Below, piece by piece: positions 76-60,843 of a DNA stretch of 64,000 nucleotides. The stretch spans positions 6,076,001-6,140,000 of the forward strand of contig NC_087446.1 in NCBI RefSeq assembly GCF_036321535.1. Reading direction: 5' to 3'. Every line of letters starts with the position of its first letter. Within the stretch, counting starts at the first letter, position 1. The translations under genes and the position numbers were made by a program. The notes beneath the pieces were generated by a model that was not told the DNA's origin, did no database searches, and saw only the letters and a list, made by a program, of their open reading frames with translations. The DNA comes from Camelus dromedarius (lineage: Eukaryota).

Positions 76-1961
76 CTGCCCAGATGCGGGTGCCTGCAGA
101 ACCCTGATTCAAGAGCCTGGGTTCCAGGCCTGGCTCTGGAATGATGAGCCCTATGACCTTGAGCTGGTCAGGAACTTTCCTGAGCCTCAGTTTACCCATC
201 AGAAAAACATTAATAGATAGCATATTGACAGGCCTTGCGGGGACAAGAATGAGGGTCATCGTCCCTGTTCTCAAAGAGCTCTGAGTCTGGTGGGGTAAGA
301 CAGAAATCTGGACTGTCCTGATGCCGGGGATGGGGTATGCACAGGATACTGTGGGTGCGGGGAGGTGGGCACCCTGGGGATGAGGGATTTTGGAGGATTT
401 CTTGGAGAGGATGAGGGCCAAGATGGAAAGGCAAATGGAGGTGGGAGGGAGGAAGGAAAGGCATTCTATGGTGAGGAGGCAGTGGAGCTGAGGAGACCCA
501 GAGGTAAGAGCTGCATACTTGCTGGGGACAAGCTCCTGGGTGCAACAAAGCAGGGAAAATTCCAGACAGGGATATAGAGCTAAGAGGCTGGAAAAGCCCA
601 AAGCTTTGGAAGCCAGGCTAAGGATCTGACTTTAAAGGAAGATAACGGTGAGTCACCAACAGCTGTTAAACAGAAAGTGCTGCGGTGGACTACGTGAGTC
701 TCTGTGGCAGCTGTGGGGACAAGAGGGGGGCCTCCCAGGTCAGAGTAATGGAGAAGAGGGGACAGGCAGCCAAGTTTTGAGGAGGTTGGTCAACAGAGTT
801 GGAATCAGACTGAATGGGGTGAAGGAGAGAGGCAGATGAGGAAGAGGAAGATAGCCAGGTTTCTAGTATGGCAGTGACTGCAGCTGAGGAAGTGAGATCA
901 GGAAGGGCAGGAGTCAGGAAGAAAAGGGCTGCCTCTGGACATGCCCGGGAGCTGTGTGGTAGAGGGGTGCAGCAGGCCACTGGCTGCCCACATCTGCATT
1001 TCAGGAGAGAGGGCTGGGCTGACGATGCAAAGAGAGCTGAGGTTCCAGAGTGAGGAGCGAAGACCAGAGCCTGGGTGAGCTCCTCCAGACTGAGTGTGCA
1101 GAGTGCAGTGAGAAGGAGTCTTACAACCCCGAACCCCAATTAAGCCACTGGACTGGATGCTTTCCAAGCATCTGCCAGGCCTGGAATCTCTGAGCCTTTG
1201 AAATCTTGGGAATGAGACTGCCCAAAGGAAAATTCCATGATCTGGGTTCCCATTAGTTTCCTGTCACCAACCAGCTGTGTGACTTTAGGCACGTCACAGC
1301 CCCTCTAAGACCAAATGAACTTCTAGCTCTCGTGTTGACCTATTCATAGTTCCATGTAGGATAACTTCCATACATACAAGTCTCCAACTCACCTTCCAGG
1401 ACTTAAGGGCTGGGGGTAGGGGACCAAGAAAGAATTCCAGGTGAGGTACCTTTTAAGCAACAAGTATCTTCCTGAAAGGCTGAATGTGAATGATTTAGAA
1501 GGTCTCAGGTGAGATCACTCTTCACATCTAGAGGACCCAGGCAGTGTTGACTGGTAGATAAACCACCACTTATCGAAGTGCTTGTCTGTATTTTCATATA
1601 GGTGGTTTGCTTTTAAAGCTGGGTTCACCTATAGATCACCCGATTATTTCAGCTCTTGGAATCATGGAAGATGCTAATGGACTGACTCAGCATAATTGCT
1701 CTCCCACAAGTGACCTCCCTAAACTTTCCTTCTGATGGCTTCCCTCAACCTGATCTCTGACTAGTACATTGGGACCCAGCTCTGTGCATCCTCTGTGTTC
1801 TGCCCCTCAACCCTGCTCCCTTTTCCCCCAGCTCATTCAACTCTGACCTAAAGTCCCCCTTCCCTTTCTGGATCTACTCAAGCATAATCCAACTCCAGGC
1901 CCACACACCCCTGCCCTCCTCAGCAGTGCGGTGTATCCCCAGCCCAGCTCTTTGCACTTAC

Positions 1962-3258
1962 CTTTGGTTTCTCTGGCCAGGTCCAGAGTGGTGGGCTCTG
2001 TGCCCCCATCTGTGGCAGCATCAGCTGCAGCACGGTCCAGAGCTGGGTCTGCGCTTCTGTTTGGCCCTGATGGGTAGTTGGCAATGTCTGATGTAGTCAT
2101 GTTAATGACACTGTCCAGTGTAGTCTCCCCAGGGGCTGGGTCTGGGGTGACTGGCACAACTGAACCCATGGCTGTGCCCAGCCTGCTTGTGTCCAAAGCA
2201 AGAGAATCCGTAGTTATGTCCAGCTTGACTGCATTTTCTCTAGCCAGTGCCATGGCTGTGTCCGGCCTCGCTGTGCCCAGCTTGACTGGGTCTGGTGCTA
2301 CCCATTCCATGGCTGTGCACTCTGCAGTTGAATCTGGCTTGGCTGTGCCTGCTGTAGCCAAGTCCATGGCCGTGCCCAGTTTGGTATCCAGATCAGGGAG
2401 CTCGGTGCCTGTGTCCAGTTCGGATGTATTTGGTGTAGCCAAGTTGACAGCCAAGCCAGGTCTATTGGTGGCCATTGTGGCTGAATGTCTGACTGTGCCT
2501 GGCCTCATTGTGCCCAGAGTAGTCAAATCTATGGCCATTGCAGGCCCCACAATAGGGGTAGCCCTTTGGAGATGCAGCCGGGGTCTCGGAATACCCCTGG
2601 ATCGGGGCTTGCCTCTTCCTGGAGAAGCTCTGGTGGGCACATGGGCAGACATTGGGACAGGTTGCCTCTGACCCACTGAGCCTGGCCCTGCAGGACCTGG
2701 TGGATTATGAGCTAACCGGGATTGGAAAGGTAGGGTCAGGTATGAACCCACCAGGGGCTTCTCCACTATGGGCATCCTGCTAGGTTTGGCCAGACCTGGG
2801 TTACCTGGGCCTTCAGAGTGGACCCTGCCCCCTGGCGCTAGGGTCACAGATGGTAAGCCTGGAGCAGGCAGCCTCCCTCCTCCATGGGTGCCAGCCTCCC
2901 TGCCTGGGGTGGACAGTTCTTTCCAGCAAGAAGGTAGGGGGCCCAGGGGCCATGCCTGGCTGTGCTGGTGGAGTGTTAAGGAGATGGAGCTGAGCTTTCT
3001 GGGCACAGGGCTCTTGCCTGTCTCCTGTGGGGGCACACTCCGGGCCCTGACTCCAAGAACCGGTCGGCTGGAAGCCTGTGGGATGTGGCTTTGGGGAAAG
3101 GCATCCAAATGGATGGTCTTCCTGAGAACAGGGATGAGAGGCGATACCCCTCCAGGGAGCTTTGAGGGGCGGGCAGGGCGCCCCAGGAGGTGGCTGTGGG
3201 AGGAGGAGGTTCCGGGGCCTGGGGCTCCATGAGGCTGCATCTCAAAGTCGTTGTCCAT
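1962..3258 (-). CDS. SEPTIN3: Septin-3 long isoform, first coding exon (432 codons + 1 nt; disordered N-terminal extension). Remaining exons lie left of the window
   Basis: Open frame MDNDFEMQ...DLARETK from ATG 3258. Pyrimidine-rich acceptor ...tctgttgatCAG gives an exon start at 3277 (19 nt UTR). Donor AAAG|GTAAGT at 1962/1961 is phase 1, matching the K-G junction of SEPT3 (MSK|GLPETRTD as recalled). Synteny with SMIM45/CENPM agrees. Confidence 0.85.
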
Positions 3259-6190
3259 CCAGGTCTTCTGTTTTCCCCTGATCAACAGAGAAAAGGGGCC
3301 AAGCAAGGGTGAGGTGCTGGGTCCTGGAGGTGGCAGCCTTCCCCTCCTGACTAGCAGTTAGCCCCGCCTCTGAAGGGGCCTGGTTTGGGGGACTGCCACG
3401 TCCTCAGTGGAGGACACGTCCCTTCCTACAGCCCTCCTACGGCTCCTGCCTGCTCTGTGCTACACACCTCACACGCGTGGGCCTTCTCACACACACCCCT
3501 ACCTAGACACCAGGTGAATGCAGGAGAATGTTCCCAAATTGGGTGGCATCCAATGAGCAGGCTGCCCCCAGCAAGAGGAAACTCGGGGGTGGGGTTTACC
3601 TCTCCCTTTGCCTGGGCCTGAGTGTGGCCCCTCTCTCCATGGACAGCTCCATGGGGGTCATCTATACATGTTCAGGGACCCCAGTGGAGGGCAGTGGTTA
3701 TTGGAAGCCTGTCTGCCTCTTCCAGAAGGGGTCAGAGGTTCCCACCCACAGCAGCCAAAATAGGAGTTCAGGCATCCAGGTAGGAGGCCGGGAGACGACC
3801 AGTTTGGCTTCAGAAGGGGTCTGCACCTGGGCCTCCTGCAGGGAACCAAGAAAAAGCCCTGGGCTGGCCTGTTGTTGGAGCCAAAATCAGCACCGAAGTT
3901 AGAAGTGAAGAGAGCCCTAGACAAGGGGAGGTTTGGGAACTGGAGAAGGAACGAGCACTTGCAGGAGGAGATTTGTCTAGTGAGTGAGCCACAATCCCTG
4001 CCCTGGAGGAACCTGCCACCCCAGGGTGCCAGGCAGTGAGCAGGCAGAGCTACAAGGGAGGTGAGTCTTGTGAGGGAAGCATTAGCTCAGTCTTGGGGTT
4101 AAAGTAGGGAGGCTAGGCCTGGGGCTGGGGAAATTCACACAGAAGGCCCGAAGGTGAGGAAGTGGGGCATCTTTCTGAAAATCCACTGTGGGGCTCCCAG
4201 GCTATATCTGGGGGGAGAGGGGACACAAGGCTACAGGTGCGCTGGGGCCCAGGCCAGGCCACAGCAATGCTCAGGCCCTGGAAGATGACCTGGTCAGATC
4301 TGCAGGTGGCCACTCAGGGCAGTGTGACAGAGAGATCAGAGGGGAACAGAAGTGGAGGCAAGGGGGGCTACTAGGACGCTGTTGAAACACTCTGTGGGCT
4401 GGGGGTGAGGCTGGAGAAGGACACATAGACAGCAGAGGGAGCAGTAGGACAGCCTGGACATGGGGATTCAGTGTTGGGGGCAGGGGTGTCAAGGACTCTG
4501 GCTGGTGGTCTGTAGAGATGAGGCTTTCCCCGAGGGGGGCTCCAGAGCTCCCAGATGCCCAGGTGCACACTCTGGGCTCCGTATAATTCACCCTCTGGAA
4601 CAAAGTTGTTTCTGCTGCTTTCAACACAGCAAGCCGGGACATGATGCTTGGGGAGGCCAGGCCAGGGCTGGCAGCAGGGGCTCATTCTAGGTCCCTAAAG
4701 TCTGGAGCAAGGATAGGGAAGGTGGGACACTGGAGGGGTCTTCATCATCCCTCCCAGTGCCCCAGCCCCTCATCCCTCTCCAGTCATGCATTTGTACGCA
4801 AGGCTGCCCTGGCCTCCATCATGTCCCCGTTTGGCATATCCCTGCAACCCTGCTTTCAGGCTCTTACTCACAACCACACATACCTGGGCACTCGTGTGTT
4901 TACCCTGCACTCAACCACTAACATCCACCCTCAGTGTACGCACACACAGAGCAGGCCAGAGACAGAATTTCTGAGATCTGTCTGTTCTAACACCACCAGA
5001 TCCCCATCCCCTCACTGAGCCTCCAGCCCTATCAATCACTTGGTCCTGTCCTCCCCTCACCCACAAATACCCACCTACCTTTATCAGAGAACAAGAAACG
5101 TCTGCTGGTCCTCAGTCTGGGAAGCTGACTCTAGTGCAGGGCCCTCACCTCCTCTGCATCCAGATTCTGGCCATAGTGACCAGCTCAGGAGCTTCACCCC
5201 TCTGGTCCCCTCAGGGGCTTTCACTCAGTCTCCAGGCTACAGTCCCAGGCCAAGGGCCCAGCAGTCTCCTGACTTGTCGCACCAGCTACATCCACAGCTG
5301 TGCTGGGCTGTAGGGCAGGGAGGGGCTGGTTTCTCAGCAGTGGGCGTCAGTGAATGGCTGCTGTGAGCCTCTGGAATCCCAAAGGGCCATGGGAGGCTCA
5401 TGATGGCCAGGCTCAAGGCCACCTGGGAGGTGGTGCCCTGCTGCCTGCCCTCCTCACATCAGCTCTGTGTCCCACAGAGAGATGTCTGCAGTAAGAATAG
5501 GGATACTGCAAATATGGCCACACTGCAACGGTCCCAGAGCCAGCCTCACTTCTGCTCTTCCTCTGCATTGCCCCACACCCTGTTTTGTTCTGTGACCCTC
5601 AGACTGTTTTGCCCACCCGTGTAAGGTCTTTCCTCGAGCAAGCTGGGGTTCCTGCAGGCCAAGGCAGGGCTCTCCTGAGCCTGTGCTCACTCCACCTGGA
5701 CCCAGTACCAAGGCCCTGAGCATGCAAAGATGACCCTCCCCTGGGCTTGAGGGCACCCACAAGACCACCCAGCCTGGCTCTGGCATTGCGGGCCATCAGC
5801 AGACCCTAGCCCTTGGGCTGGGCTGGGCACCCTCCTCTGCCTCTATCATAGCAATAGTAATAATGAAGATGGTATTAATAATAGCTACCATTTAGTGAGC
5901 ACTTACTATGTGCCAGGCACTAGTTAGGGCTGGGAAGGAGCTCACAGTCTGCTCAGGAAGATGGGTATGTAAACAGATCCTTACAGTAACTATAACACAG
6001 CAGTGGTGGTAGACATCCTCCAGCCACTCACCCTGAGCCAGGAACTAGGCTAAGCATTCTCCTGGCATCTCCTGTAATCTTCACCTTGTCACTTGCTTTT
6101 TGCTGCTGAGGACATCACAGCCTACACAATGCTGTGTGGTCTGGTCTGTTTTTCTCTGTGTTGCTCTCCTGAGCGAGTAAGCTTCTGGAG

Positions 6191-40052: not shown

Positions 40053-42616
40053 AATAAACTTGACTTAAGAGCTATGTTTGAATGAAAAAAAAAAGAAAGG
40101 AAGACTACATTGAGGAATAACCTAACATTTACCACACTGGTCTGATGGTGAAATTTCGCTTCTTAACAGCTAAGTCCAAGCAGAGATCCGAGGCCTACTC
40201 CTTCTCTGTTCAGGAGGCACAAGTGGGAAGGTTTGTCTGGAGTCAAGCACCTGCACATGTCGTCCACGGTGCCTGCTGAGTCCTCAGGACCTGCCTGGTG
40301 CAGGCACGTCGGAGGCACCCAGTCAATGTGTCAAGTGAGTAGCTCCGCTTCTCCTTCAAGGTGGCCAAGGTACATGACTGGCTCTCTCCAGCTGGCTGGA
40401 GGCCTTGAGGGCCACCTCCTCTGCTCTCCACCAGAGTCAGAGCGGCCACCAGGAGACAGGCCCGGGGCAGCCCGTGCAGAGGTGGCTCGTGTAAATGAGC
40501 CCAGACCTGGCCCCACCCTCTCCCAGGGAGAGGTTCCCCCTGCAGTCTCCCAAAACCCAGCCAGCATGGCCTGAATGTCTGGCACACAGGTTAAGAGATG
40601 CCTGGTCCGTACTAAGGGTACTGCAGGGCTGAGGTTACAGGTCACAGCACCGCTGGTGATGGGCTGAAGACTGCGGCCCAGTCTTCTGGCCTTGCCCCCA
40701 CCCCTCTGCCCCATAGGAGGGCTTTCCCTGCCCCGGCTCCTCTCCAGGCTCCTGGCTCCCCCACCCCCTCACCATACACCCACACCTACACCCACACCCA
40801 CCACCCCAGACCCACTTCTCCTTTGCAGATGCCCCACCGCCTACACCTTCCTGCCACAGAGTTGCTGGCCCGTGAGCAGGGGGACAGAGAGGCAGTGGGC
40901 CACGGCTCCTCAAGACCAGCCGACTCAGGGTTCTGTGTGAGTTCTCGGGTCCCTGGAACCAGAAACCTGGGGGCCAGTCTTGCTCCCCTTACTCCGTAGC
41001 ATCACCCTCTCCACCTAAACACCTACTAGCTTGTTCCCTCACCCTGGACCATGGCGCCAGCCTCCTTGCTGCTCTGGTGGCCCTGTCCAGTCTCCAACCC
41101 CACAGCAGCCTGGGAGAGGGTCCCTTCTAAAGCATAGCTCAGAGAATGTCTCCCCCACTCAGAACCCTCCTTGCCCCAGGCCTGTGGTTGAGGCCTGACC
41201 CGGCCCATCTGCAGCCTCAGTCTCCCTCCCTCTGCAGCATCCCCTGAAGCAGTGGCCATGTCTGTCCCCAGAGCAAGCTTCCCCTTTCCCCTCTCCATGC
41301 ATTTGCCCTTGCCTGTCCTGTCACTCTGCCTGGAAGTTTTCCATCCCCCTTAAGCTGCTAAAGATCTACTCCTGCCCCTAAGCCCCTCTCTGTCCTTCCT
41401 CTGTGCACCCCCAACCCTGAGTGCTTATGGGTCTGGCATTGCCCACCCTGAGGCACTAAGCCTGAGCTCCATGCTGAAGCTCTCTGCCAGCTCCCGCCCG
41501 CAGGGAGGGGACAGCAGATGCCAAGGAAGATTGAGGGGGCTTGTGTGTCTGTCTGAGAGACCTGGGTGAGAAACAGGTGGGGCTTCCCCAAACATTGAGG
41601 AGTAGGGACAGTGCCTCAGTGAGACACAGAGAGGAGCAGGCCAGGACACACACAGCCTTTGGAAAAAGGAATTGGGGTGGGTGGGCTTCCTACTACCTGT
41701 TGGGCCTTGGTCTGTCTGTCAGTCTGTCTCTTCGTCTGCTGATCTGAGTCTCCCTCCTGCTTACCCTCTGGAGACCACCCCATCCCCAGCCCTACACCAC
41801 CTGTGCCCTCCACTCCAGCCAGTGGTTCCTCGCTAACAGGCAGATCTGACTTTGACACTCCCAGTTTAAAGCCCTGCATGGCTCCCCAGTGCCCTTCCGG
41901 CCAGTGTCTGGGGTTCTCTCACTCAAGGCCCCAGCCCAGCCCTCTGGTCCCAGCACTCTCTGGCCTTCGTATTTGGCCTCAAGGCCTTTGGTCACACTGG
42001 GCACTCCTTTGGCCCTCTCTCCATCTAGTAAACACCTTCTCACCATCTCCTCCAGGAAGCCTTCCTGTCCCCTCCATGGTGATGGCCTGGCCTGATACTG
42101 CTGCTGTATGGGAGTCCCCTGGGGCCTGGTACAATATCGGCACTCAGGACTGTGTTTGATGAACTGACCAGCTCTGCCTGAGAAGGGCAGGAGGGCTCCC
42201 CAGAAGAGGCAGGTGGGGGGAGATGGCGGGTGGGGATCACCTGGGACAATGGGCTGGCCTTTGGGAGCAGGACAGAGGAGGCCACCCAGAGGTCTGTGTC
42301 CTGATTAAGAGGCCCGTCCTTTGCTGCCTGGAGCAGGCCCTGGTCTGAGCTTCAGCCTTGTCCCTGTGCCCAGCAGACGGCCCGCCCAGTGGTTGTCTGG
42401 GGGTGATGGTTGACCGGTTGAATGGAGGAACCACAGATAGAAGGTCTGGGGGGCTGAGGCCCTGGCTAAGAGTGGTCCCACCCGGTCACACCCCAATAGT
42501 CAGGAGGGCGGGGCCATGGAGTGGGTGGTGGCCCCTCCCTGTTTCCTCCTGGTGGGACAGCAGAGGTCAGACTCAGTCTCAGCCGGGTGTGCAGTGGGAG
42601 CATGGGCTTCGGCAGC

Positions 42617-44118
42617 ATGAGGCGAGGGGCGAGGGGTCTGAGGGGCAGGGACGGGCCGGCACCCACGCAGTGCCTGCAGACTCAGTGCTTCGACGTGCTG
42701 GTCCGCAACTGCGTGGCCTGCAGTCTCCTCCGGACGCCGGAGCCTAGACCGGGTAAGAGTCGACCGCTGGGACGACTGAGCACAGGGCGGCCCTGGAGAG
42801 GGAAGAGGGTCCTGTCACAGAGGCCTCCACCCTGCCAGAGTCTCAGGCATGGCCTCCACCTGCCCCAGGACCTGGGAGGTCACCTGATTAACGGGAGTGT
42901 GTGGCCTGGGGATTGGATGGGGACCAGCCAACGCTGCGTGGCCCTCACCGTCCCTTCTCTTCACTCCCCTCCCTCCCCTGTCCTCCCCCCCCCCCCCCCC
43001 CCGCCACCGTCGGGCTGTCCCTCCCCTCCCCGGCCCAGCCTCGCCTCCCTCCGACCCTTCCCCTCCCCGTTCGTCCCTCTCTTCTGCCCCCTGCCCTCCC
43101 TGTCCGTCGCCTCCAGCAGCCGGCCTGAGCAGCCTGGCGCCCGGGACGGCGCTGCAGCCGCAGGAGTCGGTGGGCCCCGGGGCGGCGACCGAGGTCGAGG
43201 CGGAGGCCGCGCTGCCGCTTCCCGCGCTGCTCTTCGGCGCCCCCGCGCTGCTGGGCCTGGCGCTGGCCCTGGTCCTGGTGGGCCTGGTGAGCTGGAGGCA
43301 CCGAAGGCGGCGGCTCCGCGCCGCGGCTGCTCCGGAGACCCCAGAAGCCCCGGGCGGCGACGGTAAGTTCGGCGTCTAGGGGGACCGAGAGGCACTGCAA
43401 CGGAGGGGGTCAGGGCGTGTGAGGCTGGGAGCCGTCGGAGGGGAGACGTGGCCCTTGAGGCACACTGCCCTTAGGGGCGTGGGGACCTCTGAAGGGGAGG
43501 CAGGGCTCGGGGAGTGACGCAGGCAGAGGGGGCAAAGAGCGCGCTCCTAGGCGCTGAGGCTGAGCCGGGAGGTCGTCCCGCCCGAGACACCGGTCCAGGT
43601 GAGGGACACAGCTCTGGCCTCCCAGACCCGTGTGAGGAAGAGATCGGAGGCTGGGGAGCCTGGTGGAGGGAGGGGGTCTGTCCTACCCTCTCTCTGGGAC
43701 GGCCAGACTGGCTCCCACAGCTCCTCTCCCTTCTGTCAGCACTGCCATTTTACCGGACCTCTCAGAGCTTCCTGTTCTGAGGGCCCATCACGTGCCTCCC
43801 AACCCCCCATCCTTGCAGTGGGGCTTCAACTGACTTCTCTCTCATAAGTCAGAAGGTTGTCCCTCCAGGGGGGCTTCCAGAACCGAGATGCGGGAAGTCT
43901 GTGACCCAGTCCTGACCCTGCATTCCCCCTAACCAGAGCCCCTGGACAATGTCACCATCCTCTCCCCTGGAACCCTGGATGTCACAGCTCCTATCTGGCT
44001 TCCACCCAGTGAAGACCCAGCCACTACCCCACCTTCCCACAGCATCCCTGTGCCAGCCACAGAGCTGGGTTCTACTGAGCTGGTGACCACCAAGACGGCC
44101 GGCCCTGAGCAACAGTAG
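42617..44118 (+). CDS. TNFRSF13C: BAFF receptor (TNF receptor superfamily 13C), 186/187 aa; join(42617..42752,43120(or 43117)..43362,43937..44118)
   Basis: Partial Cys-rich domain CLQTQCFDVLVRNCVAC with the DxL motif; TM LLFGAPALLGLALALVLVGLV; TRAF3-binding PVPATELGSTELVTTKTAGPEQQ tail. All introns GT-AG, phase 1. Confidence 0.97.
42985..43002. repeat. C18 homopolymer in the pyrimidine-rich TNFRSF13C intron 1
   Basis: Counted directly; lies in a C-rich tract from 42950 to 43116. Confidence 0.9.
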
Positions 44119-46529: not shown

Positions 46530-49171
46530 CCTTTTTTTTTTCAATTGAAATATAGTTGATTTACAATTTTGTGTTAGTTTCTGGTGTACAATATAGTGAT
46601 TCTGTTATACATAAATACATACATACCTATTCTTTTTAAGATCCTTTTCATTATAGGTTATTACAAGATATTGAATACAGTTCCCTATGCTATATGGTAG
46701 GACCTTGTTTATATTACATACAGTAGTTTGTACCTGCTAGTCCCAAACTCCTAATTTATCTCTTACTCCCTTCCCCTTCGGTAACCATAAGTTTGTTTTC
46801 TACGTCTGTGAATCTGTTTCTGTTTTGTAAGTAAGTCTGTTTGTATCATTTTTTTAGATTCCACATATAAGTGACATCATATGATGTTTGTCTTTAACTG
46901 ACTTACTTCACTTAGTATGATAATCTCTAGGTCCATCCATGTTGCTACAAATGGCATCATTTCATTTTTTATGGCTGAGTAGTATTCCTATATATACATA
47001 TACCAAACTTTTTTATCCAATCATTTAGTTTGCTCCCATGTCTTGGCTATTGTGAACAGTGTTGTTATGAACATTGGGGTGCATGTATCTTTTCAAATTA
47101 GAGTTTNNNNNNNNNNNNNNNNNNNNNNNNNNNNNNNNNNNNNNNNNNNNNNNNNNNNNNNNNNNNNNNNNNNNNNNNNNNNNNNNNNNNNNNNNNNNNN
47201 NNNNNNNNNNNNNNNNNNNNNNNNNNNNNNNNNNNNNNNNNNNNNNNNNNNACAGCCTCTCTAGCATNNNNNNNNNNNNNNNNNNNNNNNNNNNNNNNNN
47301 NNNNNNNNNNNNNNNNNNNNNNNNNNNNNNNNNNNNNNNNNNNNNNNNNNNNNNNNNNNNNNNNNNNNNNNNNNNNNNNNNNNNNNNNNNNNNNNNNNNN
47401 NNNNNNNNNNNNNNNNNNNNNNNNNNNNNNNNNNNNNNNNNNNNNNNNNNNNNNNNNNNNNNNNNNNNNNNNNNNNNNNNNATGAGCTATTTGTATATTC
47501 TGAAAATTAAGCCCTTATCAGTTGCATTATTTGCAAGTATTTTCTCCCAGTCTATAGGCTATCTTTTTGCTGTACAAAAGCTTATAAATTTGATTAGGTC
47601 CCATTTGTTTATTTTTGCTTTTATTTCTATTGCCGTGGGAGACTGACATAGGAAAACTGCTACAAATTATGTCAGAGAATGTTTTGCCTATGTTCTCTTC
47701 TAGGAGATTTATGGTGTCCTGTCTTATGTTTAAGTCTTTAAGCCATTTTGAGTTTATTTCTGTGTATGGTGTGAGGGAGTATTCTAACTTCATTGATTTA
47801 CATGTGGCTGTCCAGCTTTCCCAACACCATGTGCCTAAGAGATTGCCTTTTCTCCATTGTATATTCTTGCCTCCTTTGTNNNNNNNNNNNNNNNNNNNNN
47901 NNNNNNNNNNNNNNNNNNNNNNNNNNNNNNNNNNNNNNNNNNNNNNNNNNNNNNNNNNNNNNNNNNNNNNNNNNNNNNNNNNNNNNNNNNNNNNNNNNNN
48001 NNNNNNNNNNNNNNNGAGGGTTATGCCTCCAGCTTTGTTCTTTTTCCTCAGGATTGTTTTGGCAATTCTGGGCCTTTTGTGATTCCATATAAATTTTAGG
48101 GTTATTTGTTCTATTCTGTGAAAAATGTCCTGGGTAATTTGATAGGTATTGCATAAAATCTGTAGTTTGCTTTGGGTAGTATGGTCACTTTAATAGTATT
48201 AATTTTTCCAATCCAAGAGCATGCAATATCTTTCCATTTCTTTAAATCATCTTCAATTTCTGTTATCAATGCTTTATATTTCTCAGTGTATAAGTTTTTC
48301 ACCTCCTTGGTCAGGTTTATTACTAAGTTGTTTGTTTGTTTGTTTGTTGATGCGATTTTATTTTATTTTACTTATTTATTTTTTGAGAGTTATGTTTTAC
48401 CCGGCAGACATTTCTGAGGGCTCAAACCCCTTTGAGCCTGGGATGACAGCCTCTCAGATTGCTCTCTGATGTGATTTTAAAGGGATTTTTTTTTTTACTT
48501 TCCTTTTCTGATATTTCATTGTTAGTGTAAAGAAATGCAACAGATTTCTGTATGTTAATCTTGTATCTTGCTACCTTGCTGAATGCATTTATCAGTTCTC
48601 ATAGTTTTTGTGTGGAGTCTTTAGGATTTTCTATACATAGTATCATGTCATCTGCATACAGTGACAATTTTACCTTTACCTTTCCAATTTGGATCTATTT
48701 CACTTCTTTTTCTTGTCTGATTGCTGCGACTAGGACCTCCAATACTATGCTGAACAGAAGTGGTAAGAGTGGGCATCCTTCTCTTGTTCCCGATTTTAGT
48801 AGGAAGGCTTTCAACTCTTCACCGTTGAGAATTATGTTGGATGTGAGTTTGTCATAAATAGCTTTTATGATGTTGAGATATGTTCCCTCTATACGCACTT
48901 TGGTAAGAGTGTTTATGATGAATGGATGTTGAATTTTATCAAATGCTTTTTCTGCATCTATTGAGATGATGCATCATTGAGTTGAAGGTTTCTGTCCTTC
49001 ATTTGGTGATGTGGAGTATCATATTGATTGATTTGCATATGTTGAACCATCCTTGAGACCCTGGGATGAGTTCAACTTGATTGTAGTGTGTGATCTTTTT
49101 AAGTGTTGTTGGATTCAGTTTGCTAACATTTTGTTGAGAATGTTTGCATCTATATTCATCAAAGATATTGG
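46530..49171 (-). mobile_element. 5'-truncated L1 (about 2.6 kb: degenerate ORF2 RT/C-terminal region plus 3' UTR), with three N-runs
   Basis: Minus-strand ORF2 fragments [22 protein letters not shown]...[46 protein letters not shown]; poly-T at 46532. TSD AAAGGCCCTGA at 46519-46529 and 49172-49182. Confidence 0.92.
48361..48467 (-). mobile_element. Short polyadenylated insertion inside the L1, resembling an ERV LTR R region
   Basis: TSD GATG(C/T)GATTTTA at 48349-48360 and 48468-48479. Minus strand ends ...ccctcagaaatgtctgccgggtaaaacataactctc followed by an A-rich tail. Confidence 0.6.

Positions 49172-54919: not shown

Positions 54920-60843
<5,924 letters not shown>

Follow-up and report, generated by a model that had tools for sequence, protein, structure and literature searches.

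To our knowledge, published work describes septin-3 as a short septin that is specific to neurons and lacks an N-terminal extension, and the microtubule binding of the SEPT3 subgroup is credited to SEPT9. SEPT9 binds microtubules directly via its N-terminal region, as stated in PMC6822581, which cites Bai 2013 on this point. SEPT5, a septin that carries an SxIP motif, associated with the end-binding (EB) protein EB1 in glutathione S-transferase (GST) pull-downs, plus-end tracking of SEPT5 not being shown there (PMC6822581); thus, an EB-binding septin is not without precedent. The present analysis concerns a long 5' exon of the septin-3 gene, SEPTIN3, on the minus strand near the left end of a stretch of 64,000 nucleotides from Camelus dromedarius (hereafter the window; NCBI RefSeq assembly GCF_036321535.1, contig NC_087446.1, positions 6,076,001 to 6,140,000 of the forward strand). 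The original prediction made from this DNA was that the exon encodes an N-terminal extension with several SxIP/SxLP-like motifs, by which long septin-3 could couple neuronal septin octamers to growing microtubule ends. The conclusion reached here is that the stretch in question is probably the basic half of a genuine amniote-wide alternative SEPTIN3 5' coding exon, and that its function is likely to reside in short linear motifs, of which one type may bind EB proteins.

Binding of SxIP motifs to EB proteins has been characterized experimentally: the preferred residues are Arg or Lys at x, Ile or Leu at the third position, Arg or Val at +1 and Leu or Trp at +2 (PMC3967968). The four SxIP residues alone bind very weakly, and much of the affinity comes from the residues that follow them; the SRLP motif of CDK5RAP2 binds the EBH domain at 21 nM (PMC12695022). 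The general premise of the original prediction, that SxIP motifs bind the EBH domain and that the N-terminal region of SEPT9 binds microtubules, agrees with these sources (PMC6822581, PMC12695022). The existence of the long septin-3 exon is already on record in public annotation, RefSeq included, and the same exon is contained in the annotated SEPTIN3 long isoforms (human RefSeq E-I; predicted X1-X5 elsewhere). A literature search returned no paper on a long septin-3 isoform, on its function, or on septin-3 with EB proteins, and the exon is apparently unstudied.

Structure and orthology of the exon

The ORF listing of the window (ORF, open reading frame) contains a 489-codon open frame on the minus strand, from 3306 to 1837. 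Within this frame, an exon is delimited by an acceptor (ttgatcAG, with AG at 3279-3278, preceded by a polypyrimidine tract) and by a phase 1 donor (AAG|GTAAGT, with GT at 1961-1960). From the start codon ATG at 3258-3256 it encodes 432 residues, as far as K432 (codon end 1963), plus one base of the next codon. The long exon originally proposed is a real coding exon, but its size is limited to these 432 residues (3277-1962). It is divided by composition into two halves:

1962..3277, minus strand: long alternative 5' coding exon of SEPTIN3 (acceptor and donor, orthologues, RNA words)
2569..3258, minus strand: basic Pro/Ser/Gly-rich half, residues 1-230 (composition)
1963..2568, minus strand: acidic Thr/Ala-rich half, residues 231-432 (composition; isoelectric point, pI, of 4.3 in camel)

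The protein encoded by the exon is 100% identical to the dromedary RefSeq entry 'uncharacterized protein LOC135322504' and has 94% identity to septin-3 X2 of alpaca, 73% to orthologues in whales, 57% to the human isoforms and 42-46% to those of muroids. In about 100 placentals, at 42-73% identity, it is annotated as an N-terminal extension of neuronal-specific septin-3 (X1-X5; human curated E-I). No septin GTPase exons were found within the 64-kb window, and the gene runs past the left edge (coordinate 1), so the assignment of the exon to SEPTIN3 is made because its orthologues carry the septin-3 annotation. In the alpaca X2 model (810 residues, PF00735 and PF01926), the exon is joined in frame as ...ARETK|GLPETRTDAAMSELVPE... 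to a complete G domain. The phase of the donor agrees with this junction: the final G plus two bases of an acceptor exon that lies outside the window make the Gly of ETK|GLPE in the alpaca, cattle and whale X1 models. The original identification of the exon as a SEPTIN3 N-terminal extension is borne out by the alpaca protein, in which it continues in frame into GLPETRTD... and a full G domain. Translation from the ATG at 3258 would accordingly add 432 disordered residues, the first half basic and rich in Pro, Ser and Gly, the second acidic and rich in Thr and Ala, and splicing in phase to exon 2 (GLPETRTD...) would place this extension before the septin G domain.

The extension also has counterparts outside placentals. 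In a search of 1.84 billion representative proteins with a profile built from the placental exon, only 14 proteins matched, of which two were weak N-terminal matches, one of them in septin-3 X2 of the worm lizard Rhineura. The sauropsid profile matches have E=1.4e-4 and 1.6e-6, and E-values from a local hmmsearch range from 1e-7 to 1e-16. Sauropsid septin-3 long isoforms (X1/X2 models) of about 650 residues with full G domains were found in Lacerta, Pogona, Lerista, two Anolis, the sea turtle Eretmochelys and Alligator. The homologous N-terminus of sauropsid septin-3 implies that the extension predates the split between mammals and reptiles. No marsupial, monotreme, bird or amphibian orthologue was returned by these searches, which are seeded by words and applied to a fast-evolving exon, so that absence from these groups is not implied.

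Composition, predicted disorder and selection

The first 230 residues comprise 40 Pro, 28 Gly, 26 Ser, 19 Arg, 8 Lys and only 9 Asp or Glu, with a pI of 11.8 and a net charge of +18.5, as expected from the original description of a basic, nearly acid-free region rich in Pro, Ser, Arg and Gly. Acidic residues are absent from residues 7-51, a stretch of 45 residues. The second half (residues 231-432) carries degenerate LGTAM-DLA / GTAKPD repeats, the number of which varies by species. The size of the exon varies from 432 residues in camel to about 500 in human and elephant. The C-terminal half has a pI of 4.3 in camel, but of 8.7 in human and of 7.0 in elephant, and its acidic charge is thus not a conserved property. 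No tandem repeats were found in the DNA of the long exon, and a Pfam search of the exon returned no family, the best match being a sub-threshold one to DUF7285 (E=0.46). An internal duplication of the basic half (SKLP...PLIPVL versus SRMP...PLVGSYL) was considered and rejected, because the local alignment score of 39 is that of shuffled sequences (mean 38.6, P=0.45). The AlphaFold2 model, computed from an alignment of 54 sequences, has a mean pLDDT (predicted local distance difference test) of 42.5, no residue at or above 70 and no secondary structure; the extension is predicted to be disordered over all of its 432 residues.

The long exon is under weak purifying selection. Ratios of nonsynonymous to synonymous substitution rates (dN/dS) between camel and whale, ruminant, carnivore or mouse are 0.44-0.56 overall; for the basic half alone they are 0.30-0.49, and for the acidic half 0.62-0.77. 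Within Laurasiatheria the ratio for residues 20-100 is 0.20-0.34. The ORF is open in all orthologues seen.

Candidate EB-binding motifs and their conservation in placentals

The motifs listed by the original prediction are found at exactly the residues that were given for them: SKLP at 32-35, SHIP at 57-60, SPVP at 83-86, SRMP at 160-163 and SRGIPRPR at 220-227. Two of the five fit the consensus [ST]x[IL]P:

3154..3165, minus strand: SKLP, residues 32-35, first [ST]x[IL]P match and strongest candidate of the SxIP type, in the context GRPARPSKLPGG
3079..3090, minus strand: SHIP, residues 57-60, the second [ST]x[IL]P match

The claim of several SxIP/SxLP motifs holds for SKLP and SHIP but not for SPVP, SRMP and SRGIP, which are off the consensus. 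SKLP has a basic residue at x and lies in basic surroundings, within the acid-free stretch of 45 residues; SHIP has the acidic residue D52 five residues upstream, and is a weaker second candidate than the SKLP site. The residues after SKLP are GGVSPLIPVLRK, of which +1 and +2 are Gly, with hydrophobic and basic residues from +3 to +11. Primates read SRLP where camel has SKLP, and reptiles have a nearby SRIP. A motif of this form, S[KR][IL]P, would be a credible candidate docking site for the EBH domain of EB1 or EB3, and EB binding by the extension, as judged from its sequence, is plausible but doubtful.

Several observations weigh against it. The number of [ST]x[IL]P matches in residues 1-230 is at the level of chance (2 versus 0.76 expected from shuffles of the same composition, P=0.17); the looser pattern [ST]x[ILVM]P, which was picked after the fact, gives 4 matches versus 1.2 in shuffles (P=0.03). 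Gly follows the Pro of SKLP at +1, where Arg or Val is preferred, and the pair Gly-Gly stands first among the residues that in known motifs give much of the affinity. Motif retention was counted in 61 placental species. S[KR]LP is intact in 47 of these, with at least seven independent losses, and SHIP in 41, with at least twelve. The losses at the first site include some caniform carnivores (SKLS), Sorex (deleted), Echinops, Cynocephalus, Fukomys, Ochotona and all five muroids (QKLT etc.). Both SKLP and SHIP are gone in muroids, Ursus, Sorex and Fukomys, in which the rest of the exon persists. It had been proposed that conservation of SKLP, SHIP and SRMP above the disordered background would be a test of their function. 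When retention at positions 1, 3 and 4 was scored for each window of four residues, SKLP ranked at the 84th percentile of this background, SHIP at the 73rd, SRMP at the 49th and SPVP at the 29th; neither SKLP nor SHIP is an outlier. S32, P35, I59 and P60 are each less than 90% conserved, and the Pro and Ile positions vary more than nearby residues outside the motifs; the invariant columns are L41, P43, L51, S90, S93, S172, L174, L176, P177, F178 and R221. Thus, the placental motifs are kept more often than they are lost, but as far as the alignment goes they do not appear to stand out from their surroundings.

These results bear on the model in which long septin-3 is a plus-end tracker with multiple SxIP motifs, linking septin octamers in neurons to the growing ends of microtubules via EB1 or EB3. 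SKLP and SHIP are 25 residues apart in a basic, disordered and largely acid-free stretch, both are present in most placentals, and the precedents of SEPT5 and of the SEPT9 N-terminal region (PMC6822581) are in its favour, as is an SRIP motif that is invariant in sauropsids (see below). The model has to contend with the failure of three of the five listed motifs to be SxIP, with a count at chance and a conservation that does not appear to exceed the background, and with many independent losses, among them those in mouse and the relatives of rat. In addition, SHIP is not an SxIP motif in sauropsids, which at its place have [KR]QIP or a diverged sequence; the camel RNA sequencing (RNA-seq) runs that contain the exon are labelled as reproductive system and not as brain; and the human curated long isoforms are without the beta1 strand and/or the P-loop, which makes a role of these isoforms in octamers doubtful. 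Coupling by multiple SxIP motifs is considered unlikely.

The SRIP site of sauropsids and conserved islands

The nine sauropsid extensions have 26 invariant columns in common, and the longest invariant run is SRIP, present in nine of nine. The sauropsid SRIP is a textbook SxIP motif, with a basic x and a Ser-rich, acid-free context. It is not, however, the positional equivalent of SKLP: in both MAFFT and HMMER alignments, with high posterior support, SRIPG is aligned with S22-H-L-L-G26 of placentals, whereas SKLPGG of placentals is aligned with S-L/H-G-x-GG of sauropsids, so that SRIP lies about ten residues upstream of the SKLP position. The placental counterpart is:

3181..3195, minus strand: SHLLG, residues 22-26, counterpart of sauropsid SRIPG (HMMER and MAFFT alignments)

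H23, L25 and G26 of this SHLLG are each at least 90% conserved in placentals, without the proline that EB binding requires. Conservation without the essential proline suggests that this old island may serve something other than EB binding, which is a further point against an EB-dependent function. Hipposideros and Sorex, the latter without SKLP, read SHLPG at the place of SHLLG, which is again SxLP. The pattern formed by SRIPG, SHLLG and SKLP can be read in two ways: either the site has moved by about ten residues, which would favour an EB function, or the old island serves something that accepts Leu in place of Pro, which would speak against one.

A bolder proposal along the first line is that long septin-3 is an amniote-wide, EB-dependent plus-end-tracking septin. 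A single S-[K/R]-[I/L]-P site near its N-terminus would have been kept since before the split of mammals and reptiles, having moved in placentals from where SRIPG stands to where SKLPGG stands, and would recruit the septin, together with any filaments joined to it, to growing microtubule ends. This proposal is tentative and rather unlikely to be correct as a whole; if it is true, muroid rodents are natural loss-of-motif variants.

The residues that are most conserved in the basic half belong to other islands. The strongest in placentals are PRKLSSISLT, SPLIPVLRKT, KPLVxSYLTLPFQSRL and GRGKPRxRGIPRPR, three of which are located in camel as follows:

3115..3144, minus strand: SPLIPVLRKT, residues 39-48 (window conservation 0.915; L41 and P43 invariant)
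2974..3003, minus strand: PRKLSSISLT, residues 86-95, highest conservation of all islands (window conservation 0.95; invariant S90 and S93 in 54 placentals)
2578..2617, minus strand: GRGKPRSRGIPRPR, residues 214-227, conserved basic island that includes SRGIPRPR, which is not an SxIP motif (R221 invariant)

SPLIPVLRKT is kept in muroids and is recognizable in sauropsids as SPILKK. PRKLSSISLT has the version PRKLS[SA][IL]S[FL]T in lizards, turtle and alligator; it contains R-K-x-S, the form of a basophilic kinase site, and its RKLSS resembles RKASS in exon 3 of septin-3. According to PMC12079886, where Xue 2000 is cited, septin-3 is a substrate of cGMP-dependent protein kinase. In the GRGKPRSRGIPRPR island, G222 and R225 are at least 90% conserved and S220 is only 41% conserved. 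The function of the extension is most likely to be found in a few such short motifs within fast-evolving filler, namely MD[HK][DN]F, SHLLG/SRIPG, S[KR]LPGG, SPLIPVLRK, PRKLSSISLT, SYLTLPF and RGIPRPR.

In an alternative explanation, a sequence so rich in Pro and Ser contains the [ST]x[IL]P matches only incidentally, and the islands act via other partners without EB binding; a basophilic kinase might phosphorylate PRKLSSIS, for example, or SPLIPVLRK and SYLTLPF might be docking sites. In favour of this explanation, the invariant residues L41, P43, S90, S93, S172, L174, L176, P177, F178 and R221 lie outside the motifs, whereas S32, P35, I59 and P60 vary; muroids lose both motifs yet keep the islands; mammals have SHLLG without proline where reptiles have SRIPG; and the likeness of RKLSS to RKASS may be relevant in a protein that is a kinase substrate (PMC12079886, citing Xue 2000). 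An invariant SRIP that is the longest run in nine sauropsids is hard to ascribe to chance, however; a placental S[KR]LP within about ten residues of the SRIP place fits relocation; and the alternative partners are hypothetical. Incidental motifs are given a probability approaching even.

Splice forms and transcription

The gene models splice the long exon in frame to exon 2 (GLPE...FNIMVV), to exon 3 (GQSGLGKS...), to exon 4 (VIEEGG...), or to exon 2 and then exon 4, and joining to exon 2 yields a full G domain. Many species have predicted full-length models of about 800-860 residues that contain PF00735 and PF01926, including a form of 856 residues in bonobo. In each of the five human curated isoforms (E to I), exon 2 and/or exon 3 is skipped, which deprives them of the beta1 strand and/or the P-loop (GQSGLGKS) and makes the entry of those isoforms into octamers doubtful; if the annotation is right, their GTP-binding core would not be intact. 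The dromedary annotation files the long exon as a separate uncharacterised gene. The skipped human exons and the dromedary model, which ends in a short exon and has no septin domain, are points against a septin extension. Two further exons are involved:

210..286, minus strand: short alternative terminal coding exon of LOC135322504 (…ETK|DSELFENRDDDPHSCPRKACQYAIY*; acceptor AG at 288-287, stop at 212-210)
4592..4642, minus strand: upstream exon with ATG (MSRLAVLKAAETTLFQR in alpaca X2; tblastn 17/17 identical; donor AGG|GTGAAT)

In the LOC135322504 model, the donor after 1962 is spliced to the exon of 25 residues at 286-210, giving a protein of 457 residues without a septin domain. 'Uncharacterized LOC' or read-through models are found in mouse, Dama, Hipposideros, Heterocephalus, Callospermophilus, Ctenodactylus, Condylura, Nomascus and Pan. 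The upstream exon (ATG at 4642, donor at 4591) contributes coding sequence in the alpaca model. The frame of its ATG in dromedary differs from that of the main ORF, and when the exon is joined to 3277 a stop is reached after 28 residues, which amounts to an upstream ORF of 28 residues before the ATG at 3258.

The LOC135322504 model suggests that the exon might mainly encode a stand-alone disordered protein, or belong to a weakly constrained transcript, without being joined to the septin G domain; any function of a stand-alone product would then be independent of septin filaments. The similar models in at least nine other mammals are consistent with this, as is a dN/dS of about 0.5 overall and of 0.62-0.77 in the C-terminal half. 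Against it, the donor and its phase fit exons 2, 3 and 4 in all species, and the G domain is intact in the full-length models of many mammals and in every named sauropsid model. That an ORF of 430-500 codons is open across placentals and has a homologous N-terminus in sauropsids speaks for its translation. A product unjoined to septin seems doubtful on the whole.

The exon is transcribed. In three RNA-seq runs, it was present at 0.85, 0.85 and 0.67 of sampled words versus 0.25, 0.16 and 0.10 for the upstream intron; because its share exceeds that of the intron in the same runs, the exon is enriched in RNA. The best runs for the exon are labelled 'reproductive system metagenome', not brain. The exon structure, orthology, predicted disorder, weak purifying selection, transcription and motif conservation statistics come from the data themselves; which partner the extension binds, in which tissue it is expressed and whether it enters septin octamers are matters of inference. 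The partial GTP-binding core of the human curated long isoforms and the reproductive-system label of the RNA call for caution, since the biology may be neither neuronal nor filament-based. Logan and ENA contigs that contain the ORF were rejected as evidence of splicing, because every one of them follows the genomic sequence without a gap; those from mouse stop at poly-C and (CTG)n repeats, which are assembly breaks and not transcript ends.

Neighbouring gene

An exon that encodes the BAFF-R TALL-1-binding module (PF09256, E=2.7e-17) is located at about 42660-42750 on the plus strand, within the ORF 42521-43366, and its presence in the window places TNFRSF13C upstream of SEPTIN3, in conserved synteny. 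The order of TNFRSF13C and SEPTIN3 matches the human gene order at 22q13.2. The window also contains four runs of N, with a total of 667 bases, within 47107-48015 and 56031-56202.

Comparison with known systems

The long isoforms of SEPT9 (SEPT9_i1 to i3) resemble long septin-3 in that they belong to the SEPT3 subgroup and have a long disordered extension from alternative 5' exons, in which a basic part is followed by a more acidic part. They differ in mechanism: the K/R-R/x-x-D/E repeats of SEPT9 bind beta-tubulin tails along the lattice, whereas EB-dependent tracking of tips is proposed here. A scan of the camel exon for SEPT9-type [KR]xx[DE] found none in the basic half and two matches only, at residues 401 and 432. 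The placental-exon profile search returned only septin-3 extensions and no similarity to SEPT9 was seen, no search having been aimed at it.

The SxIP signals of plus-end-tracking proteins (MACF, APC, CLASP, CDK5RAP2, STIM1) are similar to the septin-3 candidate in that their core, S-[K/R]-[I/L]-P, is embedded in a disordered region that is basic, rich in Ser and Pro and free of acidic residues. The septin-3 candidate differs from them in having Gly-Gly after the Pro in place of the favoured hydrophobic or basic residues, in being dispensable in many mammalian lineages, and in that the reptile and mammalian sites are not positionally equivalent. SEPT5 differs from septin-3 in belonging to the SEPT2 group and in being without a long extension.

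The absence of both placental motifs from mouse, the relatives of rat, bear and shrew, and the presence of a textbook SRIP in reptiles, provide natural controls. If S[KR][IL]P binds EB proteins, long septin-3 would connect septins directly with the plus ends of microtubules. Like the extension of SEPT9, an extension of 300-500 residues that is found from reptiles to humans would give the SEPT3 subgroup a second member with a regulatory tail.

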